From Convolutriloba macropyga (taxonomy: Eukaryota): a stretch of DNA of 64,000 nt. The notes under the pieces were generated by a model, which searched no databases, was not told the DNA's origin, and saw only the letters and a program-made list of their open reading frames with translations. A program made the translations under genes and the position numbers. The stretch is taken from NCBI RefSeq assembly GCF_964194025.1, contig NC_134472.1, forward strand, positions 4,464,001-4,528,000, in the 5' to 3' direction. Shown piece after piece: positions 1 through 61,405 of the stretch (its first letter is position 1; every line of letters begins with the position of its first letter).

Positions 1-3000
1 CCAGGTAACCACCCAACAAAGCATGTATATGGGAAAAACTGAAAATGTTCAGCAAAAACTCTTTGCATTTGGCGTCAATAACAATACGATCAACACCAAA
101 TGAAAATTGAACTAGTTTGTTCCTACCACAAGTTGGGATAAAACAACGAGAAATAGGTTTTGACCTGCAAATGCATCAATCAATTGCGTCTCGTGTAAAT
201 TGGGCGAAACTAATGCTTGCGATGGACAAAACAATTGAAATCTCCTACTGCTATAAATTTTATCTTTCCTCATTCATCGAGGTTTAGGAAGCAGAAGAAA
301 GCGAAGAATTTGTCTTTTGTCCTTTGGTGTTTGTTCTGATTAAAAAGTTCTATGATCACAAACTAAAATTTTCTTTTATTAGGAATAATGAACAAATCTG
401 AAAATGCAGACCCTATTTCTTAGTTCAGAAACTAAATATCGAAAGAAGTTGAAGTATTTTAATCTCTTATCACCTATCACCTAGCACACCTATCACTAGA
501 CCTCCTCCATGTTTGCTCTTGAGATATGTTTCTCTTTCACTTTCTTAAAGCTGATAATTTTGCGGAACGAAATTCGACACTGTTGACGATAAAAAACATT
601 TGATAGAATGTGTTCCTAACAAAAGTGAAAAAAACATCCAAACACAATTATGGCAATAAAATGCATCAGCAAACTGCATCCAATTAAAAGTGGCCGGCAA
701 AGCCAAAAAATCCGTCAGTTGTGATTCGGTGTTGTAAGTAAGAGGATTTTTACATAAACATAAGAAATATCTCCTCACAATTAACAATAATTGCTAAATC
801 AAAAAAGTAATGGAAATAAATTAATTATGTGCCGACACGCCAATCATTATACCTGCACGTTTGCAATTGAGATATACTTTCTTGTCGCTACTATAAAGCT
901 GACAGTTCTGCAAAAGAAATTCACTATTACTAATTTTTGTTGGTATACCTTTTAGTTGAAGGTATGATGTCATATATAGAAGCTTTTGTCGCCAATGCAA
1001 ACATTTTTTGACCTCACACAATCAGGAGACTCCATGTATTATAAAGTAAACAACTAACTGAAACTTGTAGTCAGTTTTTTGATTAACCGGAAATTTCAAA
1101 GCATTTTTTGCCCGTTAAAACTAGGTCTTAAATGTTTGGACACTTTAGGTCTAGCAGTTTAATATGAATAACCAGTTTTTACGCCCGACAAATTACTATG
1201 GCACGCTTTTTGAGAAGCATTACTTTCTCAATTTTGATTTCTTCTTGATTTGAAGAATTTAATAGATCTCCTTTGACCCAAACAGCTCACAATTACTAAA
1301 AACGTTCTCGGCCACTTCCAATTTGATTTGTAATTCGTTAGTCTTCTGATGTTTTTCACATTTGTTTAATTGCTAAAAAATGATTGCAATCTGTGTGTTA
1401 GTAATCTGTGTGCTCTGTGCATTAAGCAGTTTTTCAGTCAACAATGTTTTGGCTTTACACCGCTGTTACAAATTTGATTTAACATTTGCGGATATTTTCT
1501 CCTGCAAAACTTATGTCTCTCGAGCAAACAGGGAGTTTTTGTTCAATTTTCCATAACCCCTCTCTGTTAAGGATTTTTTGTAGAGCTACTGGTTGGTTTT
1601 TGAGCAAATAGCCAAACGTTTTTTAATTACCTCATGTACGGTTTCTTTGATGTCATTGCCTTCATCTATTTGTTAGCAAGATATTGTGCTATTTTTGTTT
1701 TGGGTTAAAAAATCACGCAACAGAAAATGATCTAAATTTTTTGCATATTGTGTATATCTTTACTGAGTGTTCACGTCTTCTTTAATAATACAGCAATAAT
1801 AAGATAGGAGTCCTTCAGTTGTGATTCAAATTTGTTTCGCCAGCTGGATCTGCATTGGACATATTTGCTTTTTCGTTCGAGAAAAAACGAGATTAGTTAG
1901 ACAAACGAGAGGAAGTCAGGGAAATGGAGATGCTCTTTACTAACACCTACGTGACAACAAATTACCTATTTTAGGAGCCTTGCAAGATAAGAGTTCGAAA
2001 ACTAACGTTCCTTGCTCTCGTCGGATTGCTCTTCGCTTAATTTCGTATTTATCGATTTTCTTAAGTGAAAGGAGATGAGAAATTCCTTGTTTCCACAGTT
2101 AGAATCTTTTAATAAGATTTTTTCAATAGATGTTAACTAGAATTAGATTAAAATTGCTACGTTGACAGCTAGCAAAAAGCGCTGAACCTCAGTTGCTTTC
2201 TGTTCCATGGTTGATGAGAGGGAGAAGGAAAGCAATTATCTGTTTCCCGTGATATTTTTGCAAATTTTACAACCATCGTCTTAAAAGTAACACCACATGA
2301 CTTACACTGCTTTTTCATGTAAAGCAAAAGCAACATGGATCCTAAAGTGATTGACCTGTGGGAAATGCCAGTAGAAGGACCTAATTTGCTGGAGTTAACA
2401 TCATCAGTCCAACACAACCACATTGCACAGAATAATTCACCATTTCAGAAGAACCAATGATGTTTTTTCATGATGAAAAGTATTAGGAATTTGACACGGT
2501 TTCTGAGAAACTGAGCTGTATAGTAATTTTCTAGAAAAAGAGACATTGCATAGCAGTGTTAGAGGACGGTAAAATACCACTTCCAATTTCGCAAGATCTG
2601 CACAGTTTCTGAGGACATCTACAGGCAGATTTTCTGGGCCACCCAACTACGAAACGTATAATGATCCGATACAACATGAAATGATTCTTCCGTTTTTTTC
2701 ACATTGTTCAAGTTTTCTATTTGCATTGTAGTCCAACGATACAATAAAATGAACGAAAACTATTTATTGACATGGGAAACATTTTTAGCACCACCGTTGG
2801 CTACATGTTTGTTGCATTTAGCTTGCGACAAATCTGAAGGTTCCTTCCGTAGGCTTTTTAGTAAAATGTACTGAAGTTGAAAATTACGTGATTTGAAAAA
2901 CTTTGATTCAAAATTTTTCTGTTCTAAGTCTATGTCTTCTGCGAGATTGTTTTTCGACATTTTATCTCATTTGTCAATGATCAAAGTGGGCTGAAAATAT

Positions 3001-6000
3001 TTGGTTTCTCATAGTAGTGTCAAGACTGTTATTTTTGATTGGATGTGAGAGGCGTGACAACAGTTCAATCTTGATCTATGCCAACCCGTGCTAATATGCA
3101 TTTTGTGATCGTCTCTGATATCTAACGTAAAGTTTCGCCGAAAATTAGCTGAAGCAGGCATGTGGGGAAAACTGAAAATTTTCCGCAGACGCACGTCGCG
3201 TTTGATGTCACAATGGCGTAGGTGCAGAAAGACTGCTGCACCACATTCAAATTGTTGATAAGCAGTCTCACTGCTAATAATCTACCGAATTCTCTAAAAT
3301 AAAATGAATTAACAAAATCATGAATCAACAACAAAATCAACAAAATTATTATTTCTAGATTTTCGAATTTCCCCGGTAATTTGTTTTGATTTCCTGAAAA
3401 GGACTTTTACTTTCATTTTTATCTGATGTTATTCTTGACTTGTTGGGGTTGACAAAATATCGAACTAACTTGTACCAGACTTTTTTGTGAATTTCAAAAG
3501 TTTCTTTGATGCAATTTCAACTGTTTTACGAAGGTCGCTCCCTTTTTTCATTAGTTGTTCAACCGTGCGCCACGCATCAAATCTGTCCAATTTAATATTA
3601 TGCACAGTATCATAGCTTTCAATGACGTGTTGTTCCATAGGGGAATCTTACCTTTGATGTTCCGAAATTCTAATGGTACTATGTAGGCTTGGTTTGGCCA
3701 GCATTAATGGAGTTCGATCCATTACATATAGCTTTAAATACCACAATCAATTTCAACTTTTTCTCAAAATTTTCTTATGGGATTGGAAAACAAGTTCTTA
3801 GTTTTTTTGGTTGTAAAAAGGATTTGAATAACACATATTTTGTTCTGTCTAATTTCAGAATTTGGAGTGATAATTCTTCTGAATTTAAACAAAAAAACAT
3901 TGGTGATAAACTACATTTGGTTTGCAAGGGGCTGCGGTGACAAATAGCACAAAGCGGTATTCCGCAGTTGCCTTTAGTGCTGCCGAGGATGACGAGAAGA
4001 AACAAGGCAAAAAATGTTTTCTAGTGAAATTTATACTAGGAACCAGAGAACCTAGACTTGCCTAATCGGCCCCAAAAACCCGTTTCTCGCCGTTTCATAA
4101 CAAAGTGTGTGGATGCAGAGAGTGATAGTCCGATCTTAGTTCTGCCGCGTAGAGGCGTTCATAATTGAAAGTCAACTGAGAACGGGAGGGATAATGTCTC
4201 CAGCTAAACATTAACCTGAATATGATGTGTAACAATGTTGACAACCACTATCTCAATTGCGAAATGGCACCACTTGAAATAAACTTCTATTTCAAATGAA
4301 GCAATATGATTAAGGACCTGAAAGTTACTGATGTATGGGGAAAACCCAGTAGACGCAGCTATTTGGTTGGACGTACTACCATCATTCCAAAATTTTCTCA
4401 ATCTACTTGCAGAATTTTGAATGATGTTTGCTCTGTATTGAACAAAAACACAGAGGTGATAAATTAGATTTGGATTTTCCTGTTGAAACAATGACAAATA
4501 GCGGAAATCGACTGGCCTCAGTTGTTTTAATTGCCGCCAAGGATAAGGAGAACAAGCAGCGCAAGTATTTGATTCCCAGTGATATTAATACTAGAGAACA
4601 AAGAGATTGGTCTTAGCTGATCCCGCTGCAAAGACCCATTTCTCGCAGTCTGTTTGTCCGTTAACAAAATCCGTGGATCCGGGGAGGAGTTGTCTTTTCG
4701 TAGTTCTGTTGCATAGCGGCGTCCATAATTTAAAATCAACTGAGAACTTCCTACTGCCTCCTGCTACACACTTACACGGGTTCAATAAGTAACAATATTG
4801 ACAACCACCGTCTCAAATGTGAAGTAGCACCACATTACCTCAACTAGTTTTTCAACTGAAATTATAACACCACGGGCCTGAAAAAGATAGAGCTGTGGGA
4901 AAAGCTAGTAGAGGTAGCTAACTGGCTGGACTTGTTACCATCAGTCCAACACGACCAACCTACACAGAATAATCTGCCGTCCTTATTCCTTTCCCCCCGA
5001 CATTGACCATGCTCCTCCTGGCCCGCGTAGCCTGGGGAACGATTGTAATTCACCATAGCGTAAACACAGAAAGATCGCTGCACCACAAGAAAGTTGTGGT
5101 TAGACAGTCACGTTACTACTAATCTGAAAAATTCTACAAAATGAGTTAAAATGTTAATTTTTTTTTAATAATTGACAATGATTGTCCCATTTACATTTTT
5201 TTTACCTTCTGTTCTCACAAAGACCTTTCAAATTTTTGTTTTAAATTTTTTGAATTTCCCAGGAACATTTTTCAACTCTTAAAAAGGAGGTTTTACTTTC
5301 ATTACTATCTGTTGGTATCATTTACTTGCTGTAGAAGAGCATTTTTTTTGAATTTTAAAATTCAATTTTTTTGCATTCGATCCAAACCTTCATTGTCAAT
5401 TGCCGTCCGCTACAATTGTCACGAGTATTTACATATGGTTTCCACTTTTTTTGTTGGTTGCTTCTATTGCAATTAATTTGTCAACACTGCAACATGCATC
5501 AAGTATGTCGCATTCAATATTATGCGCTGTAACACCACATTCAACGAGGTGTTGTCCCAAATTCAATGAAGTCTTGTCCGGTATGTAAATTGCCTTGGCG
5601 TATATGCAAAAAGTTGGCTGCACCACAAGAAAAGTGGTTAGGGAATGACACTACTACTAATCAACCAAATGCTACGCATAGAGTTGAAATATTAACCATT
5701 TTTCAAATAATTTATAGTTATAGTTACATTTACAACATTTTTCTTAAAATTATTGCACCCAAAAAAATTCAATTCTTGTTTCAAAGTTTTGAAGTTTCCT
5801 GATAATTTTTCCAACTTTTAAAAGGGAGTTTTTTTTTCATTACTATCTGTTGTTATCCATTACATTTTGTAAAAGAGCATTTTTTTGAATTCAAAAGCAA
5901 TTTTTTTTAAATTCGATCCAATAATTCATTGTCAACTCTCGCCCGTCGTCCTCCTCGCGAGTATTTAGATGCCAATGCAACCTTTTTTTAAATATGTTGC

Positions 6001-6469
6001 TTCAAAAATCCTTAGTTTGTCAACCCTGCAGCATGCATCGAATAGGTCCAATTCAATGTTATGAGTTGTACCTCAACATTGAATGAGGTGTTTTCCCACA
6101 TAGAATGAGGTGCTGTCCTGCTTGTTGTGGCCAACATTGATGGAATTGGATCCCTTACATGAAACTTTTAATACCACAAGCGTTTTCAGATTTTTGATAT
6201 TTCCTCTGTGTAAAATGAAAAACTTTGGTAACGAACTAGAATTGGATTTCATTTGCTAAAATGACAAATAGCACAAAGTTCTGGGTCGCAGTCGCCTTCA
6301 GTGCCATCGACAATATGGAGAAGAAGCAGAGCAAATGATTATTCCAAGCGAAATTTATACTGGGGATCAGCGAGACTGGCCATACCAGACGCCACTGCAA
6401 AACTCATTTCTTGCAGTCTGATTACAAATTGCATAGATCCGGGTAGTGGTTGTCCTCTCGAAGTTTTAT

Positions 6470-9400
6470 TAGCGTAGAAGCTTCCATAATTGACTGGATT
6501 TGAACCATCAGTCCAATACAACAACACTGCACAGACAAATCTGCAGTCCCTCTGCCTTTCTACCGACATTCACGATGATCCTCCTGGCCCCCCTAACCTG
6601 GGGACCGCATGTAAATCACCATAGCGTAAACGCCGAAAGATCGCTGCACCACATGAAAGTTGTGGCTAGGCAGTCACATTACTACTAATCGAACAAGATC
6701 TAAGGAATGAGTTGAAATATTGACAAATTTTTCAAATCATTGACAGTTATTGTTCCATATACAATTTTTTTCTTACATTTACTAACCACACAAAATTTTC
6801 AATTTTTGTTCCAAGGTTTTGAAATTTTCAGGTATTTTTTTCGACTCATTGTCAAATGCCGCCTGCTATACTCGTCGCGCTTATTTAAATATGGTTTCAA
6901 CATTTTTAAAATGGTTGCTTCTATTGTCTTTAATTTGTCAACCCTGCGACATGCATCAAGTGTGTCCCAATCCATATTATGCGTTGTACCACCACATTCT
7001 TTGAGGTGTTTTCCCACCTTCAATGAAGTGTTGTACCGCATGTAAATTGCCTTTGCGTATCTGCAGAAAGTTTGCCGCAAGAGAAGAAAAGTGGCTGTGA
7101 ATCAAACTACTACTAATCAACCAAATTCTACGAAATGAGTTAAAATACTAACGGTATTTTAAAATATTTCGCAGTTATAGTAAAGTTTGAAACATTTTTC
7201 TTACATTCATCACACCCAAAAAAATTTCAATTTTTAATTCAAAGTTTTGATTTTGCCGGGTAATTTTTTCAACTCTTAAAAGGGAGCTTTTACTTTCGTT
7301 TTTATCTGTTGTTATCCTTTACTGGTTGTAGAAGAGCTTTTTGTAATTGGAAATTTTTTTGCATTCGACCCATTAATTCATTGTCACTTCTCACCTACTG
7401 TACTCGTCAGGCGTATTTAGATGCCGTTTCAATTTTTTTATATAGGTTGCTTCTATTGTCATTAGTTTGTCATCCCTGCATCATGCATTGAGTAGGTCCA
7501 ATTCAAAAATATGCGCTTTACCACAACTCTTAATGAGGTGTTTTCCCATATACAATGAGGTGTTTCCCCGCTTGTTGTGGCCAACATTGATGGAATTGGA
7601 TCCCTTACATGAAGTTCTTTATAACACAAGCAATTTGAGATTTTTATGAATGGATTATTTCAAGGTGGGCAAACAAAATTTTTATTTTCTTGATGTGAAA
7701 ATGACTTGAATTATACACATTTTCTTCTGTCTACTTGCTTCACTTTGAATGATGTTTCCTCTGTGTTGAACAAAAAAAATTGATGACGAACTAGATTTGG
7801 ATTTCAGTTGCTACAATGACATATAGCACAAAGCTCTGGGGCGCAGTCGCTTTCCTTGCCATCGCTAATAAGGAGAAAAAGCAGAACAAATGTTTGTTTC
7901 CAGTGATGTTTATACTGGGGATCAGCGAGACTTGTCTTATCAGACTCCAACACAAAAACTCATCTCTCGCAGTCTTTTAACAAATTGCGTGCTTCCGTGT
8001 AGTGGTTGTCGTCTCCAAATTCTTTCGCGTAGAGGCTTCCATAAATAACAGTCAACTGAAAACTTGATAATTTCTCCGGCTGAACAATTAATCGAGTTGG
8101 TTGTGTAGCAATGTTGAAAACCACCATCTCATATCTGAAGTAGCACCGTATCACTTTCACTACTTTTTCAACTGCACTAATAACACCGCAGACCTGAAAG
8201 TGATTGACCTGCGGAAGAGGCCAAAAGAGGTACCTTAGTGGCTGGAGTGAAAACCATCAGTCCAACACAACCAAAGTGCACAAAATAATCCGCTTTCCCT
8301 GTTTCTTGTTTCTTTCCACCGACTTTTACGATCATCCTTCTGCCCCCCCCCCTAACCTAGAGACTGCATGTCGTTTATCTTGGCGCGGATGCAGAAAATT
8401 TGCTGCACCACATTGGATTGGCAGTCACACTTCTACTCATCTACCGAATTCTACAAAAATAATTAAATTAACAGCGGATATCCGAAACTATTTACAGTTA
8501 TAATCATATTTAAAACGTTTTTCTAACATTTTATACACTAAAAATTTTTCATTTTTTATCTAAATATTTTAGGTTCCGGCTTTTTTGTTTTCAGTTCCTC
8601 AAAAAGAGTTTTTAATTTCGTTTCTGCTTGTTGTTTTTTCTTTCCTGTTGGGGTTGACAGAATTTCGATTTAACGTGTAACAGAGTTTTTTTGATTTGCA
8701 GAAGCCAAATTTTTGGCAATTGAACTAATAATTGATTGTCAATTCCAGCCAGTACTTGCTGAGTTTATTTAGTAGCCGTTTCAGCTTTTGAGGTAGGTCG
8801 CTTCTTTTGTTATTACTTATTCAACCCTGCGACTTTTTCATTGACTTTGACCAATTCAAAACTCTGTGCATCACCACTACATTCAAGGAGGTGTTCTCCC
8901 ACTGGGCAATCTTTTTTTTGATGCTCCTAAGTTCTTTCGCGTAAAAGCTTCCATAATTGACTGGATTTAAAACCATCAGTCCAATACAACAACACTGCAC
9001 AGACAAATCTGCAGTCCCTCTGCCTTTCCACCGACATTCACGATGATCCTCCTGGCCCCCCTAACCTGGGGACCGCATGTAAATCACCATGGCGTAAACG
9101 CCGAAAGATCGCTGCACCACATGAAAGTTGTGGCTAGGCAGTCACATTACTACTAATCGAACAAGATCTAAGGAATGAGTTGAAATATTGACAAATTTTT
9201 CAAATCATTGACAGTTATTGTTCCATATACAATTTTTTTCTTACATTTACTAACCACACAAAATTTTCAATTTTTGTTCCAAGGTTTTGAAATTTTCGGG
9301 TATTTTTTTCGACTCATTGTCAAATGCCGCCTGCTATACTCGTCGCGCTTATTTAAATACTGTTTCAACATTTTTAAAATGGTTGCTTCTATTGTCTTTA

Positions 9401-12400
9401 ATTTGTCAACCCTGCGACATGCATCAAGCGTGTCCCAATCCATATTATGCGTTGTACCACCACATTCTTTGAGGTGTTTTCCCACCTTCAATGAAGTGTT
9501 GTACCGCATGTAAATTGCCTTTGCGTATCTGCAGAAAGTTTGCCGCAAGAGAAGAAAAGTGGCTGTGAATCAAACTACTACTAATCAACCAAATTCTACG
9601 AAATGAGTTAAAATACTAACGGTATTTTAAAATATTTCGCAGTTATAGTAAAGTTTGAAACATTTTTCTTACATTCATCACACCCAAAAAAATTTCAATT
9701 TTTAATTCAAAGTTTTGATTTTGCCGGGTAATTTTTTCAACTCTTAAAAGGGAGCTTTTACTTTCGTTTTTATCTGTTGTTATCCTTTACTGGTTGTAGA
9801 AGAGCTTTTTGTAATTGGAAATTTTTTTGCATTCGACCCATTAATTCATTGTCACTTCTCACCTACTGTACTCGTCAGGCGTATTTAGATGCCGTTTCAA
9901 TTTTTTTATAAAGGTTGCTTCTATTGTCATTAGTTTGTCATCCCTGCATCATGCATTGAGTAGGTCCAATTCAAAAATATGCGCTTTACCACAACTCTTA
10001 ATGAGGTGTTTTCCCATATACAATGAGGTGTTTCCCCGCTTGTTGTGGCCAACATTGATGGAATTGGATCCCTTACATGAAGTTCTTTATAACACAAGCA
10101 ATTTGAGATTTTTATGAATGGATTATTTCAAGGTGGGCAAACAAAATTTTTATTTTCTTGATGTGAAAATGACTTGAATTATACACATTTTCTTCTGTCT
10201 ACTTGCTTCACTTTGAATGATGTTTCCTCTGTGTTGAACAAAAAAAATTGATGACGAACTAGATTTGGATTTCAGTTGCTACAATGACATATAGCACAAA
10301 GCTCTGGGGCGCAGTCGCTTTCCTTGCCATCGCTAATAAGGAGAAAAAGCAGAACAAATGTTTGTTTCCAGTGATGTTTATACTGGGGATCAGCGAGACT
10401 TGTCTTATCAGACTCCAACACAAAAACTCATCTCTCGCAGTCTTTTAACAAATTGCGTGCTTCCGTGTAGTGGTTGTCGTCTCGAAATTCTTTCGCGTAG
10501 AGGCTTCCATAAATAACAGTCAACTGAAAACTTGATAATTTCTCCGGCTGAACAATTAATCGAGTTGGTTGTGTAGCAATGTTGAAAACCACCATCTCAT
10601 ATCTGAAGTAGCACCGTATCACTTTCACTACTTTTTCAACTGCACTAATAACACCGCAGACCTGAAAGTGATTGACCTGCGGAAGAGGCCAAAAGATGTA
10701 GCTTAGTGGCTGGAGTGAAAACCATCAGTCCAACACAACCAAAGTGCACAAAATAATCCGCTTTCCCTGTTTCTTGTTTCTATCCACCGACTTTTACGAT
10801 CATCCTTCTGCCCCCCCCCCCCTAACCCAGAGACTGCATGTCGTTTATCTTGGCGCGGATGCAGAAAATTTGCTGCACCACATTGGATTGGCAGTCACAC
10901 TTCTACTCATCTACCGAATTCTACAAAAATAGTTAAATTAACAGCGGATATCCGAAACTATTTACAGTTATAATCATATTTAAAACGTTTTTCTAACATT
11001 TTATACACTAAAAATTTTTCATTTTTTATCTAAATATTTTAGGTTCCGGCTTTTTTGTTTTCAGTTCCTCAAAAAAAGTTTTTAATTTCGTTTCTGCTTG
11101 TTGTTTTTTTTACCTGTTGGGGTTGACAGAATTTCGATTTAACGTGTAACAGATTATTTTTTGATTTGCAGAAGCCAAATTTTTGGCAATTGAACTAATA
11201 ATTGATTGTCAATTCCAGCCAGTACTTGCTGAGTTTATTTAGTAGCCGTTTCAGCTTTTGAGGTAGGTCGCTTCTTTTGTTATTACTTATTCAACCCTGC
11301 GACTTTTTCATTGAATTTGACCAATTCAAAACTCTGTGCATCACCACTACATTCAAGGAGGTGTTCTCCCACTGGGCAATCTTTCTTTTGATGCTCCGAA
11401 GTTCTTTCGCGTAAAAGCTTCCATAATTGACTGGATTTAAAACCATCAGTCCAATACAACAACACTGCACAGACAAATCTGCAGTCCCTCTGCCTTTCCA
11501 CCGACATTCACGATGATCCTCCTGGCCCCCCTAACCTGGGGACCGCATGTAAATCACCATAGCGTAAACGCCGAAAGATCGCTGCACCCCAAGAAAGTTG
11601 TGGTTAGACAGTCACATTACTACTAATCGAACAAGATCGACGGAATGAGTTGAAATATTAAAAAAAAATTTCAAATGATTGACAGTTATTGTTCCATTTA
11701 CGTTTTTTTCTTACATTTGTTACGCACATAAAATTTTCATTTTTTGTTCCAAAGTTTTGAACTTTTTGGGTATTTTTTTTTACTCATTGTCACATGCCGC
11801 CTGCTATACTTGTCGCGCTATTTTGAATATGGTTTCAACATTTTTAAAATGGTTGCTTCTCTTGTCTTTAATTTGTCAACCTTGCGACATGCATCAAGTG
11901 TGTCCCAATTCATATTATGCGTTGTACCACCACATTCTTTGAGGTGTTTTCCCACCTTCAATGAAGTGTTGTACCGCATGTTAATTGCCTTGGCGTATCT
12001 GCAGAAAGTTTGCTGCACCAGAAGAAAAGTGGCCGGGAATCACACTACTACTAATCATCCAAATGCTACGCACAGTTATAGTATCGTTTACAACATTTTT
12101 CTTACATTCATCACACCCAAAGAATTTCAATTTCTATTCCAAAGTTTTGATTTTCCCGAGTATTTTTTCAACTCTTAAAAAAGAGCTTTTACTTTCGTTC
12201 TTATCTGTTGTTATCCTTTACTGGTTGTAGAAGAGCTTTTTTTAATTAGAAAAGTCAAATTTTTTGCATTCGATCCAATAACTCATTGTCAATTGCTGCT
12301 CGCTATACTTGTCAGGTGTATTTAGATATGGGTTCAATTTTTCTGTTTTGGTTGCTTCCACTGTCATTATATTGTCATCTCTGCATCATGCATTGAGTAG

Positions 12401-13820
12401 GTCCAATTCATGGATATGCGCTTTACCACAACTCTAAATGATGTGTTTTCCCATAATCAATGAGGTGTTGTCCCGCTTGTTGTAGCCAACATTGACGGAA
12501 TTGGATCCCTTACATGAAGCCCTTTATAACACAAGCAATTTGAGATTTTCATGAATGGATTATTTCAGGGTGGGCAAACAAAATTTTAAATTTCTTGTTG
12601 TGAAAATTATTTGAAAGATACACATTTTTTTCTGTCTACTTGCTTCACTTTGAATGATGCCTCCTCTGTGTTGAACAAGAAAAAATTGATGACGAACTAG
12701 ATTTGGATTTCAGTTGCTACAATGACATATAGCACAAAGCTCTGGGGCGCAGTCGCTTTCTTTGCCATCGCTAATAAGGAGAAAAAGCAGAACAAATGTT
12801 TGTTTCCAGTGATGTTTATAGTGGGGATCAGCGAGGCTTTTCTTATCAGACTCCAACATAAAAACCCATATCTCGCAGTCTATGAACAAATTGCATGCAT
12901 CCGTGTAGTGGTTGTCCTCTCGAAGTTCTTTCGCGTAGAGGCTTCCATAATTGAAAGTCAACTGAAAAGTTGATAATTTCCCCGGCTGAACAATTACTCG
13001 AGTTGGTTGTGTAGCAATGTTGAGAACCACCATCTTATATTTGGAGTAGCACCGTATCACTAACACTACTTTTTCAACTGCACTAATAACACTGCAGACC
13101 TTAAATTGATTGACCTGTGGAAGAAGACAAAAGAGGTAGCTTGGTGGCTGGAGTGGAAACCATCAGACCAACACGGCCACAATGCACAAAATAATCCGCT
13201 TTCCCTGTTTCCTGTTTCTTTCCACCTACTTTTACGATCATCCTTCTGCCCCCCCCTAACCCAGAGACTGCATGTTGTTTACCTTGGCGCGGATGCAGAA
13301 AATTCGCTGCACCACATTGGATTGGCAGTCGCACTTCTACTCATCTACCGAATTCTACAAAAATAGTTAAATTAACAGCGAATATATGAAATTATTTACA
13401 GTTATAATCCTATTTAAAACGTTTTTCTAACATTTTATACCCTAAAAATTTTTCATTTTTTATCTAATTTTTTTAAGTTCCCGGTTTTTTGTTTTCAATT
13501 CCTCAAAAAGAGATTTTAATTTCATTTCTGCTGGTTGTTTTTTCTTTCCTGTTGGGGTTGACAGAATTTCGATTTAACGTGTAACAGAGTTTTTTTGATT
13601 TGCAGAAGCCAAATTTCTGGCAATTGAACTAATTATTGATAGTCATTTCCAGCCAGTACTGGCTGAGTTTATTTAGTAGCGGTTTCAACTTTCGAGGTCG
13701 GTCGCTTCTTTTGTTAATACTTTTTCAACCCTGCGACATGCCTTGACTTTGCCCAATTCAAAACTCTGTGCGTTACCACTACATTCAAGGAGGTGTTCTC
13801 CCACAGGGCAATCTTTGTTT
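6470..13820. repeat. Higher-order repeat, about 3 copies of a ~2.47-kb unit
   Basis: Equivalent ORF-track entries are offset by 2468-2471 bp (6740/9208/11679; 7960/10428; 8821/11291). Copies 1 and 2 are nearly identical; copy 3 is more diverged and slightly shorter. Confidence 0.92.
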
Positions 13821-14929
13821 TGATGCTCCGAAGTTCTGGCGGTACCCTGTAGGCTTGTTTTGGCGAAAATTGATGAAGTTTCATTCCTTACATGCAAATT
13901 TATATGCCACATGCCATGTCAGTTTTTTTTATCAAAAGATTAATTTAGGGTGGGCAATCAAGTTCTTAATTTTTTCGTCGTGAAATTTTTTTGATTAACA
14001 CACCTGTTTTTCAGTCTGCTTGCAGAATTTTGAGTGATGACACTTGTGCGTTCAACAAAAAACATTGATGATGAACTAGAATTGGATTCCATTTGCTAAG
14101 ATTACAAATAGCACAAAACTCGGAATTGCAGTTGTCGTTATTGCCATTGATGATGAGGAGAAGCAAAAGGGTAAACTTTTGTTTACCAATAAAATTTATG
14201 CCAGGGACCAGAAAGCACGGTCTTGCCTGATCCCGCCACAAAAACTCATATCTTGCAGTCCGTAAACAAATTGTGTGGATCCGGGAATTGGTTGTCTTCT
14301 CGTAGATTTGGTACGTACAGGCTTCCATAATTGAAAATCAACTGAGAAAGGGATACGGTCGCCTGCTAAAAACTTACTCGATTTGGATGTGGAACAAAGT
14401 TGACAACCACTGTCTCAAATTTAAAGTAGCGCCACACGGCTCAACTTACGTTTTTAACTGAAGTAATAACACCAAAGACTGAAGGAGATTGACCTGAGGG
14501 AAAGGCCAGTACAGGTTGCTATTTGGCTGAACTTAATATCATCAGTCCTACAGCACCACACTGCACAGAATAATCCACCTTCCCTGTTTTCCCCCGAATT
14601 TGATGCTAATCCTCCTTGCCCCCTAACTCGGGGACTGCATGAAAATCACCATGACGTACATGTAGAAAGATTGCTGCACCATAATCAAATTTTCGTTAGT
14701 CAGTCACACTACTATTAGTCTACCAAATTCTACGCAATGAATTAAAACATTAACTAAATTTGCAAATAATTTTCAGTTGTAATTACGTTTATAACCTCTT
14801 TCTTACATTTATGACACCAAAAAAGGTTTAAATTTTTTTTCCAAATTTTTTAAATTCCAAAAAAGAGTTTTTACCTTTATTACTATCTGTTGTTATCTTT
14901 ACTTGTTGTAGAAGAGCATTATTATTTAA

Positions 14930-15400
14930 TTTCAAAAGTCAAATTTTCTGCATTCAATCCAATAACTCATTGTCAATTGCTGCTCGCTATACTTGTCGCG
15001 TGTATTTAGATATGGGTTCAATTTTTCTGTATTGGTTGCTTCCACTGTCATTATATTGTCAACCCCGCGACATGCATCGAGTATGTCCCATTCAATATTA
15101 TGCTCTTTACCACAACATTCAATGAGGTGTTTTCTCATATTCAATGAGGTGTTGTCCCGCTTGTTGTAGCCAACATTGACGGAATTGAATCCCTTACATG
15201 AAGCCCTTTATAACACAAGCAATTTGCGATTTTTATGAATGGATTCTTTCAGGGTGGTCAAACAAAATTTTAATTTTTCTTGTTGTGAAAATGATTTGAA
15301 TTATTCACATTTTTTTCTGTCTACTTGCTTCACTTTGAATGATGTCTCCTCTGTGTTGAACAAGAAAAATTGATGACGAACTAGTTTTGAATTTCAGTTG
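14930..15400 (-). mobile_element. Penelope-like element GIY-YIG endonuclease/C-terminal fragment (representative copy in the array), pseudogenised
   Basis: Across copies the minus strand reads QYRANI.QN.ASRL.K..C.IQVIFT.RK...PTLK.SI.KNLK..V..SC.G.NS.NVG..KR...HLIECCGKEHNIEWDILDACRGVDNIMTVEATNTEKLNPYLNTRDKY. This matches the PLE pattern VY...C..C...YVGQT...EA..I....P.LN. Confidence 0.85.
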
Positions 15401-17460
15401 CTATAATGACATATAGCACAAAGCTCTGGGGCGCAGTCGCTTTCCTTGCCATCGCTAATAAGGAGAAAAGCAGAACAAATGTTTGTTTCCCAGTGATGTT
15501 TATACTGGGGATCAGCGAGGCTTGTATTATCAGACTCCAACACAAAAACTCATCTCTCGCAGTCTATTAACAAATTGCATGGATCCGGGGAGTGGTTGTC
15601 CTCTCAAAATTTTTTCGCGTAGATGCTTCCATAATTGATTGAATTTAATACCATCAGTCCAACATGACCAAACTACACAGAACAATCTATCGTATCTGTT
15701 GATTTTCCCAACATTGACAATGCTCCGCATGCTTCCCCCCTAAATTGGGGGCAGCATGTAATTCACCATAGCTTAAACGCAGAAAGATCGTTGCACCACA
15801 AGAAAATATGGTTAGACAGTCGAAATACTGCTAATCGATCAAATTCCACGGAATGAGTTAAAACATTAACGATTTTTTCAAAAAAGTGGCAGTTATTGTT
15901 CCATATACAATTTTTTTTCTCACATTTATTACACACATAAAATTATCAATTTTTGTTTAAAATTTTTGAAGTTCCCGGGTTTTTTTTTCTTCCCGAGTTT
16001 TTACTTTCATTACTACCTGTTGTTATCCTTTACTTGTTGTAGAGGAGCATTTTTTTACTTTCAAAAGTCAAATTTTTTGCATTCAATCTCCAATAATTCA
16101 TTGTCAAATGCCACCTGCTATACTCTTTGCGCGTATATATATATATATGGTTTCATTTTTTTGTTTGCTTCTATTGTCATTATTTGTCAACCCTTCGATA
16201 TGCATCGAATATGTCCCATTCAATATTATGCTCTGTACCACAACATTCAATTAGGTGCTGTCCCACATACAAGGAGATCCGCTTGTTGCGGTCAACGCTG
16301 ATGGAGTTGGACAATAACATGAAGCTCTTCATACCACATACGATTTCAGATTTTTATGAAAGGATTCTTTCAGGGTGTGAAGACATTTTTTTAATTTTCT
16401 TTTTGTGGAATTGATTTAGATCACAAACATTTTTTTTCAGTCTAGTTGCTGAATTTTCAGTGATGTTATTCAAAAAAATACGAAGGCGATGAACTAGTTT
16501 TAGATTCCAGTTGTTTTATACATCAACAAATAGCAAAAAACGCTGCGCCTAGGATAATGAGAGGAAGCAGGGCAAAAATGTGTTTCCTAGTGAAATTTTT
16601 ACTAGGGATCAGAAAACCTAGTCTTGCTTAGTTTCATGCCGTCTGTTTACAAATGCGTGGATGCCGGGAGTGGTTTTCCGCTCGTAACTCTGCCGCGTAA
16701 AAGCGTCCATAATTGAAAATCAACAGAACGGGATACTGCCACCAGTTAAACATTTACTTGAATAGGATGTGTAACAATGCTGACAACCACTATCTCAAAT
16801 GCAAAGCAGCCACTATCTCAAATGCCACTTGAATTAAATTTCTATTTGAAATGAAGTAATAAGTCCCCGGACCTAAAAGTGATTGACGTATAGGAAAACC
16901 CAGTAGAGGTAGCTAACTGGCTGGACCGAATACCACCATTTCAACATTTTTTCAGTCTCCTTGCAGAATTTTGAGTGATGTTTGCTCTGTATTAAACAAA
17001 AACACAGAAGTGATGAACTAGATTTGGATTCTAGTTGGTCCAATGACAAATAGCTTAGAGCGCTTGCCCCAGTAATTTTAATTGCCGCCAAAAATGAGAA
17101 AAATGAGTGCAAATATTTGTTTCCCAATGAGAATTTTGTTAGGGAACGGAGAGACTGGTCTTACTTGATCCCGCCAAAAAAATCCATTTCCCGCATTATG
17201 TTAACCGATTTTGTGGATCCGTGGAGTAGTTGTCCACTCGTTGTTTTGCTGCGTAGAGGCGTCCATAATCAACTTCACAGAATAAACCGCCTTCCCTGTT
17301 ACATGTTTCTTTGCCCGACGTTGAAGATGCGCCTCCTGCCCTCCCTTAACCGGGGATGGCATGTCATTCACCATGGCGTTGATGCCGAAAGGTCGTGGAA
17401 TACAAGCAAGTGGTGAATAGGCAATCAAACTACTACTAATCTACCGAATTCTACCGAAGA

Positions 17461-17968
17461 TCCAGACAATTTTCTGTTTTTCTCTTGCTCCTTGTCAGTA
17501 ATGCCTCAGAAATTGTAATCAAAGTTTTAATTTGATTCGCACCCGACTCCTTTCCCCTCGTAAAGGAACGCGTCGGTTACAATCAATGCACATTACCAGC
17601 ATGTCGGGAGTTTTGTTCTCCCTTCCCTTGTTTGGTTTCTGCAAGGATTGTTCAAAAGATTTCAACCACAATATTTCCAATATTACTGCCAGTGAAGCAC
17701 CAATGGCCGAACCGTCCGATTGAGTGTACCACAGTTTATTACACTCAAATTGAACACTCGTTACGGCTAGTCTCAGAATGCTCTTCATAGCTGACCCCGG
17801 AATCTCAGGAACCTCGTCAATGAAGTACAAGCTAAAGCGCAATTTCAATTGCCTCAACCGGTACATAGGTGTACAAGCTTTTAACTTCGAGAGATACTAT
17901 TAGATCATCTTATTTTAAATCTGTAGCCTCATAAGCCGCTTTGACATCCTTCGAGTTAATCTCAATAT
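17461..17968 (-). mobile_element. Penelope-like element reverse transcriptase remnant (motifs A-B) followed by a PHD-like Cys insert
   Basis: Minus strand, with frameshifts: IVSLEVKSLYTYVPVEAIEIA (motif A, cf. SLDVKSLYTNVP), then FECNKLWYTQSDGSAIGASLAVILEILWL (PLE motif B, cf. YxQxDGLAMGSPL), then MCIDCNRRV..RGKGVGCES...GITDKE...IVWI. Confidence 0.85.
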
Positions 17969-17989
17969 GTGTACCTAGTAACCTCTGGA

Positions 17990-18360
17990 AAAGAGAAACA
18001 AATTTGTTGAGAATCTGGCAACTGGTAGTGGGTACTGACAGAACAGGCGATTACCTGTGAATTGCAGCTCTGTGGGACAGCTACTGCAACAATAACAACC
18101 AGATTTGGATATCCTTCGCTTTGCAGGTGAATAATGGCATCAGTTTTAGCTTTGAGCTGCTCAATCAAATTGATCTTCTCGCTAGGGCTACAGGCTGTGT
18201 TGTTGCTCTTGTGCTTGTTGCCAGTGTTGATCACATATTTTCTTTTCTTAAACGGGGGTGTGATACACGGACGGAACAGTGAGCCACCACTATGAACCAT
18301 CACAGCATCATATGTAAATTTTCCGCAAAATACATGCTCGTAGCATCGTCAAACACGGCA
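17990..18360 (-). mobile_element. Possible LINE ORF1 (zinc-knuckle) remnant
   Basis: NTGNKHKSNNTACSP resembles a decayed C-x2-C-G-x2-H-x-S-x4-C knuckle. The segment cctcgctttgcaggtgaataatggca..ttttagctttg recurs at about 23062-23102. Confidence 0.3.
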
Positions 18361-19028: not shown

Positions 19029-21478
19029 AGTTCGAGTTCGAGTATTCTGGTCTGTAGGTTTGTTGCCTCTGTCGACCAGCTCCTCCGTGTTGTCCCTTAC
19101 CCTAGGACAATTCGCGGAACAACCTGTGTTGCCAGTGTCTGTCAAGTCGTGTCTTGAAGATATCCAAGCTTTCACTTGACACGACGTGTTCTGGTAACTC
19201 GTTCCAATCTTTAGGTCCATCAACTGAGAAAAACTTTTTCCTCAGCTCCAGTCGTGCTCTTCTGATGGAAAGTTGCTGCCCATGTTTCCTCGAGTTTCGT
19301 TCGATAAACTGAATTAGATTTCCCGTAGCAGATTCGTCGTACATTCCATTGATGATTTTGAAGATTTCTATCATCCGGCCTCTTTGTCTTCTGTATTCTG
19401 TGGTTGGTAGCTTGAGTTCCCTGAGCCGCTCTTCATAACTTAAACCTCGCAGGGATCCAACTAGCCTTGTGGCTCTTCTTTGAACATTTTCTATACTGGT
19501 CTTATGCTTTTTAAGATTTGGATACCAGATTTGGTTCGCGTACTCTAGGTGGGGTCTGATTAATGCTTTGTACAGTTGTAGAAATACTTGTTTGCTGATG
19601 TTAATAAAACTTCTGCGGATTAGGGCAAGAATAGAGTTCGCTTTCTTCAACTTCATACAGATGTGCTCTTCGAAACTAAGTTTGCTGTCGGTCATTATTC
19701 CCAGGTCTTTCTCTTTGTACACACTCTTAAGATTTTGGTCTTTGTTAAGATTGTACGTTCTCTCTGATGTGGTCTTCTTCTTTGATGTCAATGTCATCTT
19801 TACACATTTCTCTGCGTTGAACTCAAGGAGGCTCGTCTTCGACCATGTTCGGAGTTCTTCTAGGTCTTTCTGGAGGATTAGTTGATCTTCTACTGTTGAG
19901 ATCTCTCTGTAGAGCTTTGCGTCGTCTGCGAACAGTAGGAGTGGGGACTGAACCACGTCTGTCATTGAGTTGATGTAGATGATGAACAAGACTGGTCCTA
20001 GTACCGATCCTTGCGGTATTCCGCTCAGTACTGGTTCCCATCTTGAAGGAATTTCGTTTACCATCACTCTTTGCTCTCTTCCATTGAGGAAGCTTCGGAT
20101 CCAGTCGTGGGTTTTACCTCCAATTCCAAGTTGATGTAGTACTCTGAAGAGTCTCTGGTGAGGGACTGTGTCGAAGGCTTTTTTGAAGTCAAGGTAGATA
20201 ATATCCACTTCGTTATTCTTATCTAGCGCTTCTGTCCAATCGTCCATTGCTCTTAAGAGCTGCAGTGTTGTCGACCTTCCAGTCATGAACCCATACTGTT
20301 TCTGACTAATCAGGTCGTTTGTCAGAATATGGTTCATGAGGTGTTTTCTTACAAACTTCTCCATAACTTTGCAGCATACGGATGTCAGGCTAACCGGTCT
20401 GTAGTTAGCTGCGTCTTTCTTTGGTCCTTTTTTGTAGATCGCTGAGATGTTGGCCCTTCTCCAGTCGTCCGGGACTGTACCTGTTCTCCAAGATTCGTAG
20501 AAAATTTCTGTGAGATATTGAGCTATTTTTTCTCTTGCTTCCAGCAGAACTCTAGCGTGGATTCCGTCATATCCTGGTGATTTCGTGTCGTCTAATTTTT
20601 TTAGTTGCTCTAAGACTTCACTTGTTGATATATTGATGTTGTCGTCGATTTGGTCTCGGTTTGTGACTGCAATGTCCCAGTCTGGTTCTTCTTCGTGGAC
20701 AAACACAGATGCGAAGAACTTGGATAACGTTTCTGCTTTCTCATAGTCACAGCTTGTCGTGTTTCCATCCTCCCTCTCAAGGTCGGGGATGGTTTCCCTT
20801 GTTTTCGTTTTCTGGTTGACGAAAGACCAAAACGCTTTCGGGTTGCTCTTGCACACCGCTGCCACAGTTTGTTCTTTTTCATGTTGGCGTTTTCTAGTTA
20901 GCTTCCTGACCATGTTCCGTCTTCGTGCGTACTCTCGATATGACCAGTCCGAGTTCTCCTTGATGAACTGCTTCCATGTCTTCTTCTTTTGTTTGATGGC
21001 TTCTCTAGTTGTGGAGTCAAGTGGTAATCTACTTTTTTCTCCTCTTGTTATTTTTGTCAATGGAACGTGGTTCTCCACTGCGGTCTGGATCGTGTCCCGG
21101 AAGAGCTCCCATTTCTCGTTTACATTTTGGGTGACTGTGGAGTTGGTGTCTAATTTAGATTTCAGGTACTTTCTGATGGCTTTGAAGTTGGATTTCCTGT
21201 AGTTTCGTCGATACTTGATGTCAGTTCCTACAGTTAGAGCAAACGATGTTTTGGTCATTACATGATGGCCTTTTCCTAAGGGTGCACAATGGTCTATTCT
21301 CTTTGGTTCCAGGGAACTATGCGTCAGCATTAGATCTAGCAAAGATGGTCGGTTGTTTCTGGCACTTCGAGTTGGCGTCTTCACATGTTGTTCCATGAAA
21401 GAGTCCTTCACGGCTTCCAGGAATATCCATTCGTTGCTCTCTGCTTCACCAGTTGCACGTGCCACTTCCCAATCAATT
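19029..21478 (-). mobile_element. Young 5'-truncated CR1-clade LINE
   Basis: Uninterrupted ORF2, a short 3' UTR and a short (ACTCGA)n tail at 19029-19043. Truncated inside the APE domain at (K)IDWE. Visibly more GC-rich than its flanks. Confidence 0.93.
19102..21465 (-). CDS. CR1-type ORF2: C-terminal part of APE endonuclease plus complete reverse transcriptase (no native start)
   Basis: QHVKTPTR..SLLDLML; NPKAFWSFV; KSPGYDGIH; NYRPVSLTSVCCKVME; DIIYLDFKKAFDTVPHQRL; SGIPQGSVLGPVLF; LFADDAK; LYKALIRPHLEYA; WNELPEHVV...FKTRLD. Confidence 0.95.
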   Translation of the reverse strand: MARATGEAESNEWIFLEAVKDSFMEQHVKTPTRSARNNRPSLLDLMLTHSSLEPKRIDHCAPLGKGHHVMTKTSFALTVGTDIKYRRNYRKSNFKAIRKYLKSKLDTNSTVTQNVNEKWELFRDTIQTAVENHVPLTKITRGEKSRLPLDSTTREAIKQKKKTWKQFIKENSDWSYREYARRRNMVRKLTRKRQHEKEQTVAAVCKSNPKAFWSFVNQKTKTRETIPDLEREDGNTTSCDYEKAETLSKFFASVFVHEEEPDWDIAVTNRDQIDDNINISTSEVLEQLKKLDDTKSPGYDGIHARVLLEAREKIAQYLTEIFYESWRTGTVPDDWRRANISAIYKKGPKKDAANYRPVSLTSVCCKVMEKFVRKHLMNHILTNDLISQKQYGFMTGRSTTLQLLRAMDDWTEALDKNNEVDIIYLDFKKAFDTVPHQRLFRVLHQLGIGGKTHDWIRSFLNGREQRVMVNEIPSRWEPVLSGIPQGSVLGPVLFIIYINSMTDVVQSPLLLFADDAKLYREISTVEDQLILQKDLEELRTWSKTSLLEFNAEKCVKMTLTSKKKTTSERTYNLNKDQNLKSVYKEKDLGIMTDSKLSFEEHICMKLKKANSILALIRRSFINISKQVFLQLYKALIRPHLEYANQIWYPNLKKHKTSIENVQRRATRLVGSLRGLSYEERLRELKLPTTEYRRQRGRMIEIFKIINGMYDESATGNLIQFIERNSRKHGQQLSIRRARLELRKKFFSVDGPKDWNELPEHVVSSESLDIFKTRLDRHWQHRLFRELS

Positions 21479-21824
21479 TTTAATTATTAAAAAGCTCAGA
21501 GTGAAAATCTGGAAATATTTGGTCTGTTCTTGTGAACGGTTTTAAGACCGGTATTGAAATGCTATTCTATATTGGTGCCTGGACAATATTCGAAATCATT
21601 CACCCTTTTCTTTGCGACAAGTTTTCGACAATTGTAAATGCTGAGTTCTCGAACGCAGATTTACAATTGTCGAAAACTTGTCGCAAAGAAAAGGGTGAAT
21701 GATTTCGAATATTGTCCAGGCACCAATATAGAATAGCATTTCAATACCGGTCTTAAAACCGTTCACAAGAACAGACCAAATATTTCCAGATTTTCACTGT
21801 GAGCTTTTTAATAATTAAAAATTG
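21474..21824. repeat. Near-perfect inverted repeat: 166-bp arms with a 19-nt quasi-palindromic centre
   Basis: 21474-21639 is the reverse complement of 21659-21824; I found one mismatch (cagagtg vs cactgtg). The centre gctgagttctcgaacgcag pairs further (ctg/cag, gttc/gaac). Confidence 0.97.
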
Positions 21825-60769: not shown

Positions 60770-61405
60770 GTGAGTGGGTTGATATTATGCTCTTTATTTA
60801 TAGCCCCGTTCAGCTACTCAAACGGTTGTCATTAAGGCAATGTTTTCGAGAGAGCTAAAAATGAACGGAATGTTTTTCTCTCAAGAGAGAGGAATGCTTT
60901 CGGTCACCTGTGGATCTTTAGAAGAGTTTTTTGGTTTGCAATAAGATCAGGAGTATTAGTTTTCTAATTGTTTAATTGCTCTCAAACGAAGTTTTTTAGC
61001 AATTGTATTAGTCCTTTTTTATTTTTTTAAATTCTATTAGTCTTTTAATGCAATTTTTTTTTGCTTGACCGATTTTTCGTCTGAGCCATTTGACTTTTCG
61101 TCCTCAAAAACGGGATCAATAAGTAGCGCCCAGCGGGCCTTAATTGCTCTTAGATCCTTTCAGCCCTCTTGTCTCCAAGTATGTGATTCACAGAAACTGT
61201 TTTTGAGCCTTATACTTAGGGTGTAAAGTGCGGTTCTTAGAAACTGACCCCCCACAACAGCACCCCAAATCACCACCCTTGCACATGTTGTTGTAGCTGT
61301 CGCAGAGCTGCAAATTGCAGGTAATTTTTGCCGGATACTTGCGCTTATTGCCGTTTTTTAACTAGTACTTTTGTTGCATTTGTATGATCAGAAAAATTGT
61401 TATAA

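Follow-up and report, generated by a model that had tools for sequence, protein, structure and literature searches.

The 64,000-nt stretch of the Convolutriloba macropyga genome analysed here (C5:4464001-4528000; hereafter the window) contains, close to its left end, a tandem array composed of fragments of two retrotransposons, a long interspersed nuclear element (LINE) and a Penelope-like element (PLE) nested in it. The array belongs to the familiar class of tandem repeats derived from transposons, does not represent a new mobile element, and very likely results from locus-bound amplification at the DNA level, with no mobility of its own.

Structure of the array and its monomer

Self-BLAST of the first 22 kb of the window (175 matches) places all direct repeats within ~2.1-17.5 kb and none elsewhere in the window. 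This dense block bears out the earlier note on this DNA, which had called a repeat at 2170-17968, except for the limits: local alignment sets the left edge of the array at 2126, and the composite ends at 18100 or, given that the founding elements continue past the array up to the target-site duplication, at 18113. The inverted matches of the array are a few segments of 60-235 bp with 75-82% identity to a LINE 3' untranslated region (UTR) at 61.4-61.7 kb; the sole other inverted match is a hairpin at 21.5-21.8 kb that is unrelated to the array. The former represents a dispersed 3' UTR copy of the same LINE family (61397-61745, minus strand), the only match of the array elsewhere in the window. 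The left flank (1913-2125) is unique in the genome as judged by a genome-wide search. A candidate PLE homology in this flank was rejected, its local alignment score being equal to the shuffled background.

The entire region 2126-18100 can be assigned to a single PLE and a single LINE reference copy (BLASTN map, with protein-level confirmation by tblastn). The reference coordinates used below are those of single natural copies, L006 for the PLE and the reverse complement of L071:2101-7300 for the LINE; the reference copies overall were L006, L010, L011, L031 and L071, all from the same genome. The full monomer is ~1.38 kb long and is best exemplified by 12959-14340 (Table 1). Read on the plus strand from the left edge of the array, its order is ~15 bp of host flank with the target-site duplication, the inverted LINE 5' piece, the LINE C-terminal and 3' UTR piece, and the minus-strand PLE piece with the GIY-YIG region and 3' UTR. 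In reference coordinates, the monomer consists of LINE 4737-~5075 in sense, PLE 1985-1270 in antisense, ~25 bp of non-transposon DNA and LINE ~2245-1966 in antisense. Accordingly, three junctions can be defined: J1 joins LINE ~5075 to PLE 1985, J2 joins LINE 1966-1980 to LINE 4737, and J3 joins PLE 1270 to the short non-transposon stretch that is followed by LINE ~2245. The best-preserved LINE 3' piece encodes the degenerate CCHC-bearing C-terminus of open reading frame 2 (ORF2) and includes the 3' UTR up to an internal ACT motif; an alignment with 12 dispersed LINE 3' ends indicates that the last ~110 bp of the LINE are missing. The PLE piece covers the C-terminal GIY-YIG region and the first ~200 bp of the 3' UTR, and the last ~125 bp of the PLE are absent. 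The components and strands of the unit are thus those listed in the earlier note (PLE GIY-YIG/3' end, LINE 5' fragment, LINE C-terminus with 3' UTR), with the exception of its AT-rich spacer, which is the PLE 3' UTR.

All three components are present in nearly every monomer (tblastn of the reference peptides against the window), and the breakpoints are the same throughout the array, the oldest monomers included (alignment of 15 J1, 7 intact J2 and 10 J3 copies). The estimate of about 15 LINE tails agrees with this count of the ACT-bearing LINE/PLE junction, and the recurrence of junctions at homologous positions, along with many internal deletions, is confirmed by both the reference map and the junction alignments. 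Because all three junctions sit at the same positions in every monomer, rather than at differing ones, one chimera was amplified.

Table 1. Features of the array and of the founding elements (positions in the window)
Feature	Position	Strand	Description and evidence
Tandem array	2126-17457	.	~17 full or internally deleted monomers; self-BLAST, reference map, edge and junction alignments
Array left edge	2126-2152	+	~13 bp of host flank (2126-2138), then diverged copy of the upstream target-site duplication (2139-2152)
Foreign insertion, 788 bp	2420-3207	+	Splits the LINE 3' piece of the first monomer; outside the repeat unit
Higher-order unit, copy 1	6461-8928	.	2468 bp, three differently deleted monomers
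Higher-order unit, copy 2	8929-11396	.	98.9% identical to copy 1
Higher-order unit, copy 3	11397-13837	.	90.5-92.9% identical to copies 1/2; 40-bp deletion
Best-preserved LINE 3' piece	12959-13350	+	Reference 4737-~5075; BLASTN, tblastn E 9e-14
Best-preserved PLE piece	13351-14063	-	Reference 1985-1269; 73% over 727 bp, tblastn E 1e-21
Host flank and target-site duplication (J3)	14064-14084		Adjoins the inverted LINE 5' piece
Inverted LINE 5' piece	14085-14340	-	Reference ~2219-1966, between ORF1 and the APE domain; tblastn E 3e-11
5'-truncated PLE remnant	17458-18048	-	Reference 722-120; reverse transcriptase motifs and beginning of a PHD-like finger
True 3' terminus of the outer LINE	18049-18100	+	Reference ~5135-5185; 89-91% to L037 and L043; alignment
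Downstream target-site duplication, 13 bp	18101-18113	+	AGATTTGGATATC; 12/13 bases match the J3 copy

Nesting order and the insertion site

Every LINE 3' piece in the array stops just past the ACT motif, and the missing terminus is found only once, immediately beyond the 5' truncation of the PLE remnant, with the CAA-rich end typical of the family at 18087-18100. The PLE is therefore flanked by LINE sequence on both sides (reference ~5075 on the left and ~5135-5185 on the right), and the LINE is the outer element. This order is the reverse of the earlier proposal, a Penelope element interrupted by a LINE: the PLE is nested in the LINE, the ends of which lie on both sides and are bounded by a 13-bp duplication. 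The alternative that the LINE inserted into the PLE, with the ACT run as its tail, was rejected on the basis of the alignment of the 12 dispersed LINE 3' ends. These extend ~120 bp beyond the ACT motif to the CAA-rich terminus, so that the ACT run lies within the 3' UTR and is not the LINE tail for which it had been taken.

Immediately downstream of the LINE terminus lies AGATTTGGATATC, the counterpart of which, AGATTTGGATTTC, is located in the J3 junctions just outside the inverted LINE piece, preceded by ~13 bases with which the unique left flank also ends (2126-2138). The left-edge bases 2126-2152, which comprise both host flank and duplication, recur inside every J3 junction. The two sequences constitute the target-site duplication around a 5'-inverted LINE insertion.

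The array abuts a PLE reverse transcriptase remnant, as reported previously, and only the limits given for it (17461-17968) have to be replaced (Table 1). This remnant shows 79% DNA identity to the PLE reference (protein E 3e-36) and 78-84% identity to L002, L004, L006 and L010, and is joined to the last J1 via an internal deletion of reference positions ~722-1972.

Confinement of the junctions to one locus

The junctions were searched for throughout the 1.18-Gb genome (4694 contigs). A 241-bp J1 query recovered three young copies; the other matches start or stop at the junction, save for five that run 7-12 bp past it and represent a PLE variant, as shown by L050. A 361-bp query spanning J3 and J2 yielded 16 candidates, all of which were scored: eight are in the array and all reach the flanking PLE piece; of the other eight, seven match the LINE 5' piece alone and one the PLE piece alone, neither J2 nor J3 being crossed. 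Two 106-bp queries centred on J1 and taken from different monomer lineages, again with all candidates scored, matched the array only, apart from one PLE-only match. Of the junction k-mers suggested in the earlier note, a 25-mer (up to 3 mismatches) has four matches in the array and one elsewhere (reversed control, one), and a 20-mer (up to 2 mismatches) has seven in the array and one elsewhere (reversed control, four); the outside near-matches, C8:59414312 and C5:33667492, are at chance level. Altogether, these junction-spanning BLAST queries and k-mers found no junction-bearing copy in the genome outside C5:4466-4482 kb.

Neither parental 3' terminus is included in the units, which stop at PLE position 1985 of ~2115 and LINE position ~5075 of ~5185. 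They also carry host DNA, namely the flank and the target-site duplication, which points to duplication at the DNA level. Given the single-locus junctions, the missing parental 3' termini and the host DNA in the units, the proposal of a chimera mobilised by PLE machinery is not supported; the other mechanism considered at that time, unequal exchange at the locus, fits the higher-order and edge pattern described next.

Higher-order structure and single origin

The youngest layer of the array is a 2468-bp unit present in three copies. In the assembled sequence, copies 1 and 2 differ at ~1.1% of the positions and, in addition, at 6 gap positions, with ~9% divergence for copy 3. The remaining array aligns to parts of this unit at 70-84% identity, most of the ~17 monomers carry one of a few internal deletions, and the older monomers are located at both edges of the array, with Kimura two-parameter (K2P) distances of up to 0.49. 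The K2P distances are 0.2-0.49 between monomer types and 0.00-0.08 within the young layer; for dispersed copies, the median is 0.16. One derived deletion (LINE ~4950 joined to PLE ~1330) is common to monomers near opposite edges (4173-4448 and 16725-17002). We infer that the combination of near-identical higher-order copies with high divergence between types, along with this shared edge deletion, is the signature of unequal exchange.

An alignment of a PLE segment with 228 columns yielded a maximum-likelihood tree in which the 13 array segments fall on one side of a branch that separates them from 34 dispersed copies (support 90/72), and within the array the tree groups copies by their position inside the higher-order unit. 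Together with the identical junction positions, this single clade upholds the earlier suggestion that one nested insertion founded the array and was then amplified.

The source elements

Searching the genome with the 2.47-kb unit returns many dispersed 480-bp matches that all stop at one point of the unit. Among the 29 other PLE copies sampled, 24 have their 3' end at reference 2106-2122, with variable 5' starts; the end of the family is placed at 2112-2120. These uniform 3' ends and variable 5' ends indicate that the source of the minus-strand pieces is a canonical PLE with a C-terminal endonuclease, as in PMC8557442. The GIY-YIG domain (PF01541) is detected C-terminal to the reverse transcriptase in the dispersed copy L011:907-1653 (28.2 bits, cut-off 22.6) and reaches 19.8 bits in L010; RVT_1 scores 23.4 bits, under the cut-off of 29.6, on a 173-aa fragment (L006:4-522). 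The Atlas neighbours of the PLE carry HTH_animal, RVT_1 and GIY-YIG, but have scores of 0.80-0.83. The minus-strand GIY-YIG/3' UTR pieces of the array are recognised by tblastn with E down to 1e-34, and the PLE pieces in the window match the L011 protein with E down to 8e-27. Several PLE loci hold two overlapping copies, and many true PLE partial tandems are present in the same genome.

No match to the hammerhead ribozyme was found with Rfam at E<=0.1 in nine PLE loci or at E<=1 in positions 1-24000 of the window, and a hammerhead in the PLE 3' end was rejected on this result. By eye only, a CUGAnGA...GAAA-like string resembling a hammerhead core can be seen in the last ~125 bp of dispersed PLE copies (L006:1990-2115 and equivalents in L001-L030). 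Also rejected was a possible N-terminal GIY-YIG half ('YWTDG...') encoded antisense to the LINE 3' piece, since dispersed LINE copies share that antisense ORF. Inside the PLE reverse transcriptase, after a GxAMG-like motif, there is a PHD-like zinc finger (L010:506-1321, L001:2069-3169 and window 17458-17665), which scores 19.9-21.2 bits with the Pfam PHD model, under the 24-bit cut-off; PHD insertions in PLE reverse transcriptases have been reported for Chlamys elements (PMC8557442). A related PLE family with ~60% protein identity has many copies with an uninterrupted 869-aa frame (e.g., C16:44129045, C15:25220358 and C7:66969669) and is probably young or active.

With respect to the LINE, the plus-strand piece of the unit extends upstream into a non-LTR element at the loci L031, L032, L069 and L071. 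Exo_endo_phos_2 is detected in L071 (34.3 bits, cut-off 27.4) and RVT_1 in L031 (32.8 bits, cut-off 29.6), and the C-terminus contains a Cys-X2-Cys...His...Cys motif. The 245-bp LINE 5' fragment of the unit matches, in antisense, the sequence that immediately precedes the APE start in this LINE (tblastn E down to 4e-14); for the plus-strand pieces with the C-terminal CCHC motif and 3' UTR, tblastn E values go down to 6e-14. Upstream of the LINE APE domain there is a 2A-like peptide string (..GGIETNPGA..; L071:4822-5319, minus strand; window 12707-12943 and paralogues) that is degenerate in the array. Translational-recoding 2A motifs occur in some APE-type LINEs, and the string resembles these.

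Proposed history of the array and alternative explanations

The sequence provides direct evidence for the two founding insertions. A LINE with APE and reverse transcriptase domains and a C-terminal CCHC motif inserted on the plus strand, its 5' part being inverted and 13 bp of the target site duplicated, and a 5'-truncated PLE then landed in its 3' UTR in the opposite orientation. The later steps, as well as the origin of the inversion by twin priming, we infer. A deletion of ~190 bp across the original 3' junction of the PLE probably created J1, since a single event of this size would account for both losses at this junction, ~60 bp from the LINE UTR and ~125 bp from the PLE 3' end. Thereafter, the segment between a point ~15 bp to the left of the upstream duplication and PLE ~1270 would have been duplicated in tandem, with J3 as the closure junction, located at an A-run. 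Repeated out-of-register exchange accompanied by deletions would have expanded and contracted the array to the present ~17 monomers, homogenising the centre into the young 2.47-kb three-monomer unit and leaving older variants at the edges, with all coding parts broken. Such a history corresponds to the two-stage model for satellites derived from transposable elements (TEs) (PMC5932611).

Several points weigh against this reconstruction. The left breakpoint is only ~15 bp outside the LINE insertion, an unexplained near-coincidence that could point to some connection with the insertion itself. The inverted LINE piece (reference 1966-2245) is 2.5 kb from the direct piece (4737 onward), whereas classical twin priming usually leaves small gaps only. 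The single-origin clade has moderate support (90/72 on the 228 columns). The whole-genome DNA search scores the best candidates only, 40 of 78 for the 241-bp J1 query; with the 2.47-kb unit as the query, 39 of 1138 candidates were scored and the array's own locus was not returned, so that short junction queries were used instead, and the confinement to one locus rests on those for which all candidates were scored. Finally, sequence alone does not separate illegitimate recombination, a replication template switch and a circle with rolling-circle copying as the first step.

The last of these routes, in which the unit would leave the chromosome as a DNA circle, undergo rolling-circle copying and be reinserted at the parent locus or recombine with it before unequal exchange, has been proposed for TE tandems without intrinsic repeats (PMC5932611) and would explain the sharp unit boundary. 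Nothing in the sequence requires a circular intermediate, however, the array still has its parental surroundings, with an intact LINE end and target-site duplication to its right, and the deep, graded divergence of the monomers would allow for a small initial copy number at most, so this route seems distinctly unlikely. The position of the unit boundary ~15 bp from the LINE could also be explained if the first duplication were a by-product of retrotransposition, for example, a read-through transcript reverse-transcribed with a template jump, in which case the chimera would have been copied through RNA at least once; we regard this as very unlikely. The same near-coincidence of the left end of the array with an element boundary could be accommodated by a mobile composite retroelement, that is, a non-autonomous chimera copied via RNA by the PLE or LINE machinery, with the array as a multicopy head-to-tail insertion of the kind made by PLEs and their non-autonomous derivatives (PMC8557442). 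This is highly improbable considering that junction-bearing copies were found at this locus only, that each unit includes host flank and target-site duplication, that monomer divergence is hierarchical rather than star-like, and that ~125 bp at the PLE 3' end and ~110 bp at the LINE 3' end are missing from the units, whereas in non-autonomous PLEs the 3' end of the autonomous partner is retained (PMC8557442).

Repeated independent insertions of the LINE and the PLE at a hotspot would amount to a double or multiple insertion model. TE tandems are known to arise by double insertion (PMC5932611), PLEs show an insertion bias towards microsatellites (PMC8557442), and the junction adjoins an ACT/TTA-rich motif. 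This model is nevertheless barely credible: the truncation points are identical in all monomers (PLE 1985 and 1270; LINE ~2245, 1966-1980, 4737 and ~5075), the array PLE pieces are monophyletic, and the J1 queries found no other such PLE-in-LINE junction in the genome. PLE tandems are also known to trouble assemblies (PMC8557442), and part of the array, in particular the near-identical higher-order copies, could have been expanded by the assembler. Most monomers differ by 20-45% and hence are not assembler duplicates, and even the closest higher-order copies carry the substitutions and gaps noted above, with the third copy further diverged, so we give an artefact of this kind hardly any credence.

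The significance of the array beyond annotation is small. It is a clean, fully dissected case of a nested pair of dead retrotransposons that, together with a few host bases, became a tandem repeat with higher-order structure. That the ends of the parents and the target-site duplication have been preserved marks the amplification as a single-site event at the DNA level. In repeat annotation, the unit should not be listed in a TE library as a new composite family.

Neighbouring features

The 788-bp insertion in the first monomer belongs to a low-copy repeat and has 66-71% identity to copies elsewhere. Two further copies with 83-85% identity are located 2.5-6 kb upstream (C5:4460139-4460863 and 4463155-4463875), which suggests local duplication or hopping of a ~700-bp element. 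To the right, the array is adjoined by a separate CR1-like LINE with a 787-aa ORF (19102-21465, minus strand; RVT_1 126 bits), and a perfect-looking 351-bp hairpin (21474-21824) abuts this ORF. Elsewhere in the genome, LINE reverse transcriptase or PLE ORF matches occur closely spaced on the same strand, ~0.6-3.2 kb apart, at C6:24853601-24860019, C15:39546722-39550306 and C3:34060174-34063375, and likewise at C4:34834614-34841941 and C2:85274641-85280061. Tandem arrays of retrotransposon fragments thus seem to be common in this genome.

Comparison with known systems

Insertions with an inverted 5' part, attributed to twin priming, have reportedly been described for mammalian L1 (Ostertag and Kazazian 2001). 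The LINE in this locus has the same layout, consisting of the duplication, an antisense segment from further 5', a sense 3' segment that runs to the LINE end, and the duplication again; a short overlap of the upstream duplication with the LINE where the inverted piece begins is possible (~11/12 bases, by eye). It differs from the mammalian case in the 2.5-kb gap and in belonging to a different, CCHC-bearing LINE family with a CAA-rich end.

PLE pseudo-long terminal repeats (pLTRs) and partial tandems (Craig et al. 2021, PMC8557442) resemble the array in that the 3' part of a PLE with a C-terminal GIY-YIG domain is present in direct repeats. The array unit, however, neither starts nor ends at PLE termini, lacks the last ~125 bp and includes LINE and host DNA, and the array is therefore not a product of PLE integration. 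Non-LTR retrozymes and other non-autonomous PLE derivatives (bioRxiv 10.64898/2026.07.22.740005; PMC8557442) are likewise PLE-derived, non-coding and tandem, but they are dispersed, originate from the pLTR or the 3' end and bear hammerheads, whereas the array occupies one locus, has no PLE 3' end and gave no hammerhead match. With classical satellites, the array shares the head-to-tail and higher-order structure, in contrast to their high copy number and presence at several loci: here, ~17 monomers make up 15 kb at one euchromatic-looking locus.

The closest resemblance is to TE-derived tandem arrays and young satellites (McGurk and Barbash 2018, PMC5932611), with which the array has in common head-to-tail monomers made of TE pieces, a young centre with old edges, deletions and no coding capacity. 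What sets it apart from these is the composition of the monomer, a three-part chimera that also includes host flank and a target-site duplication.

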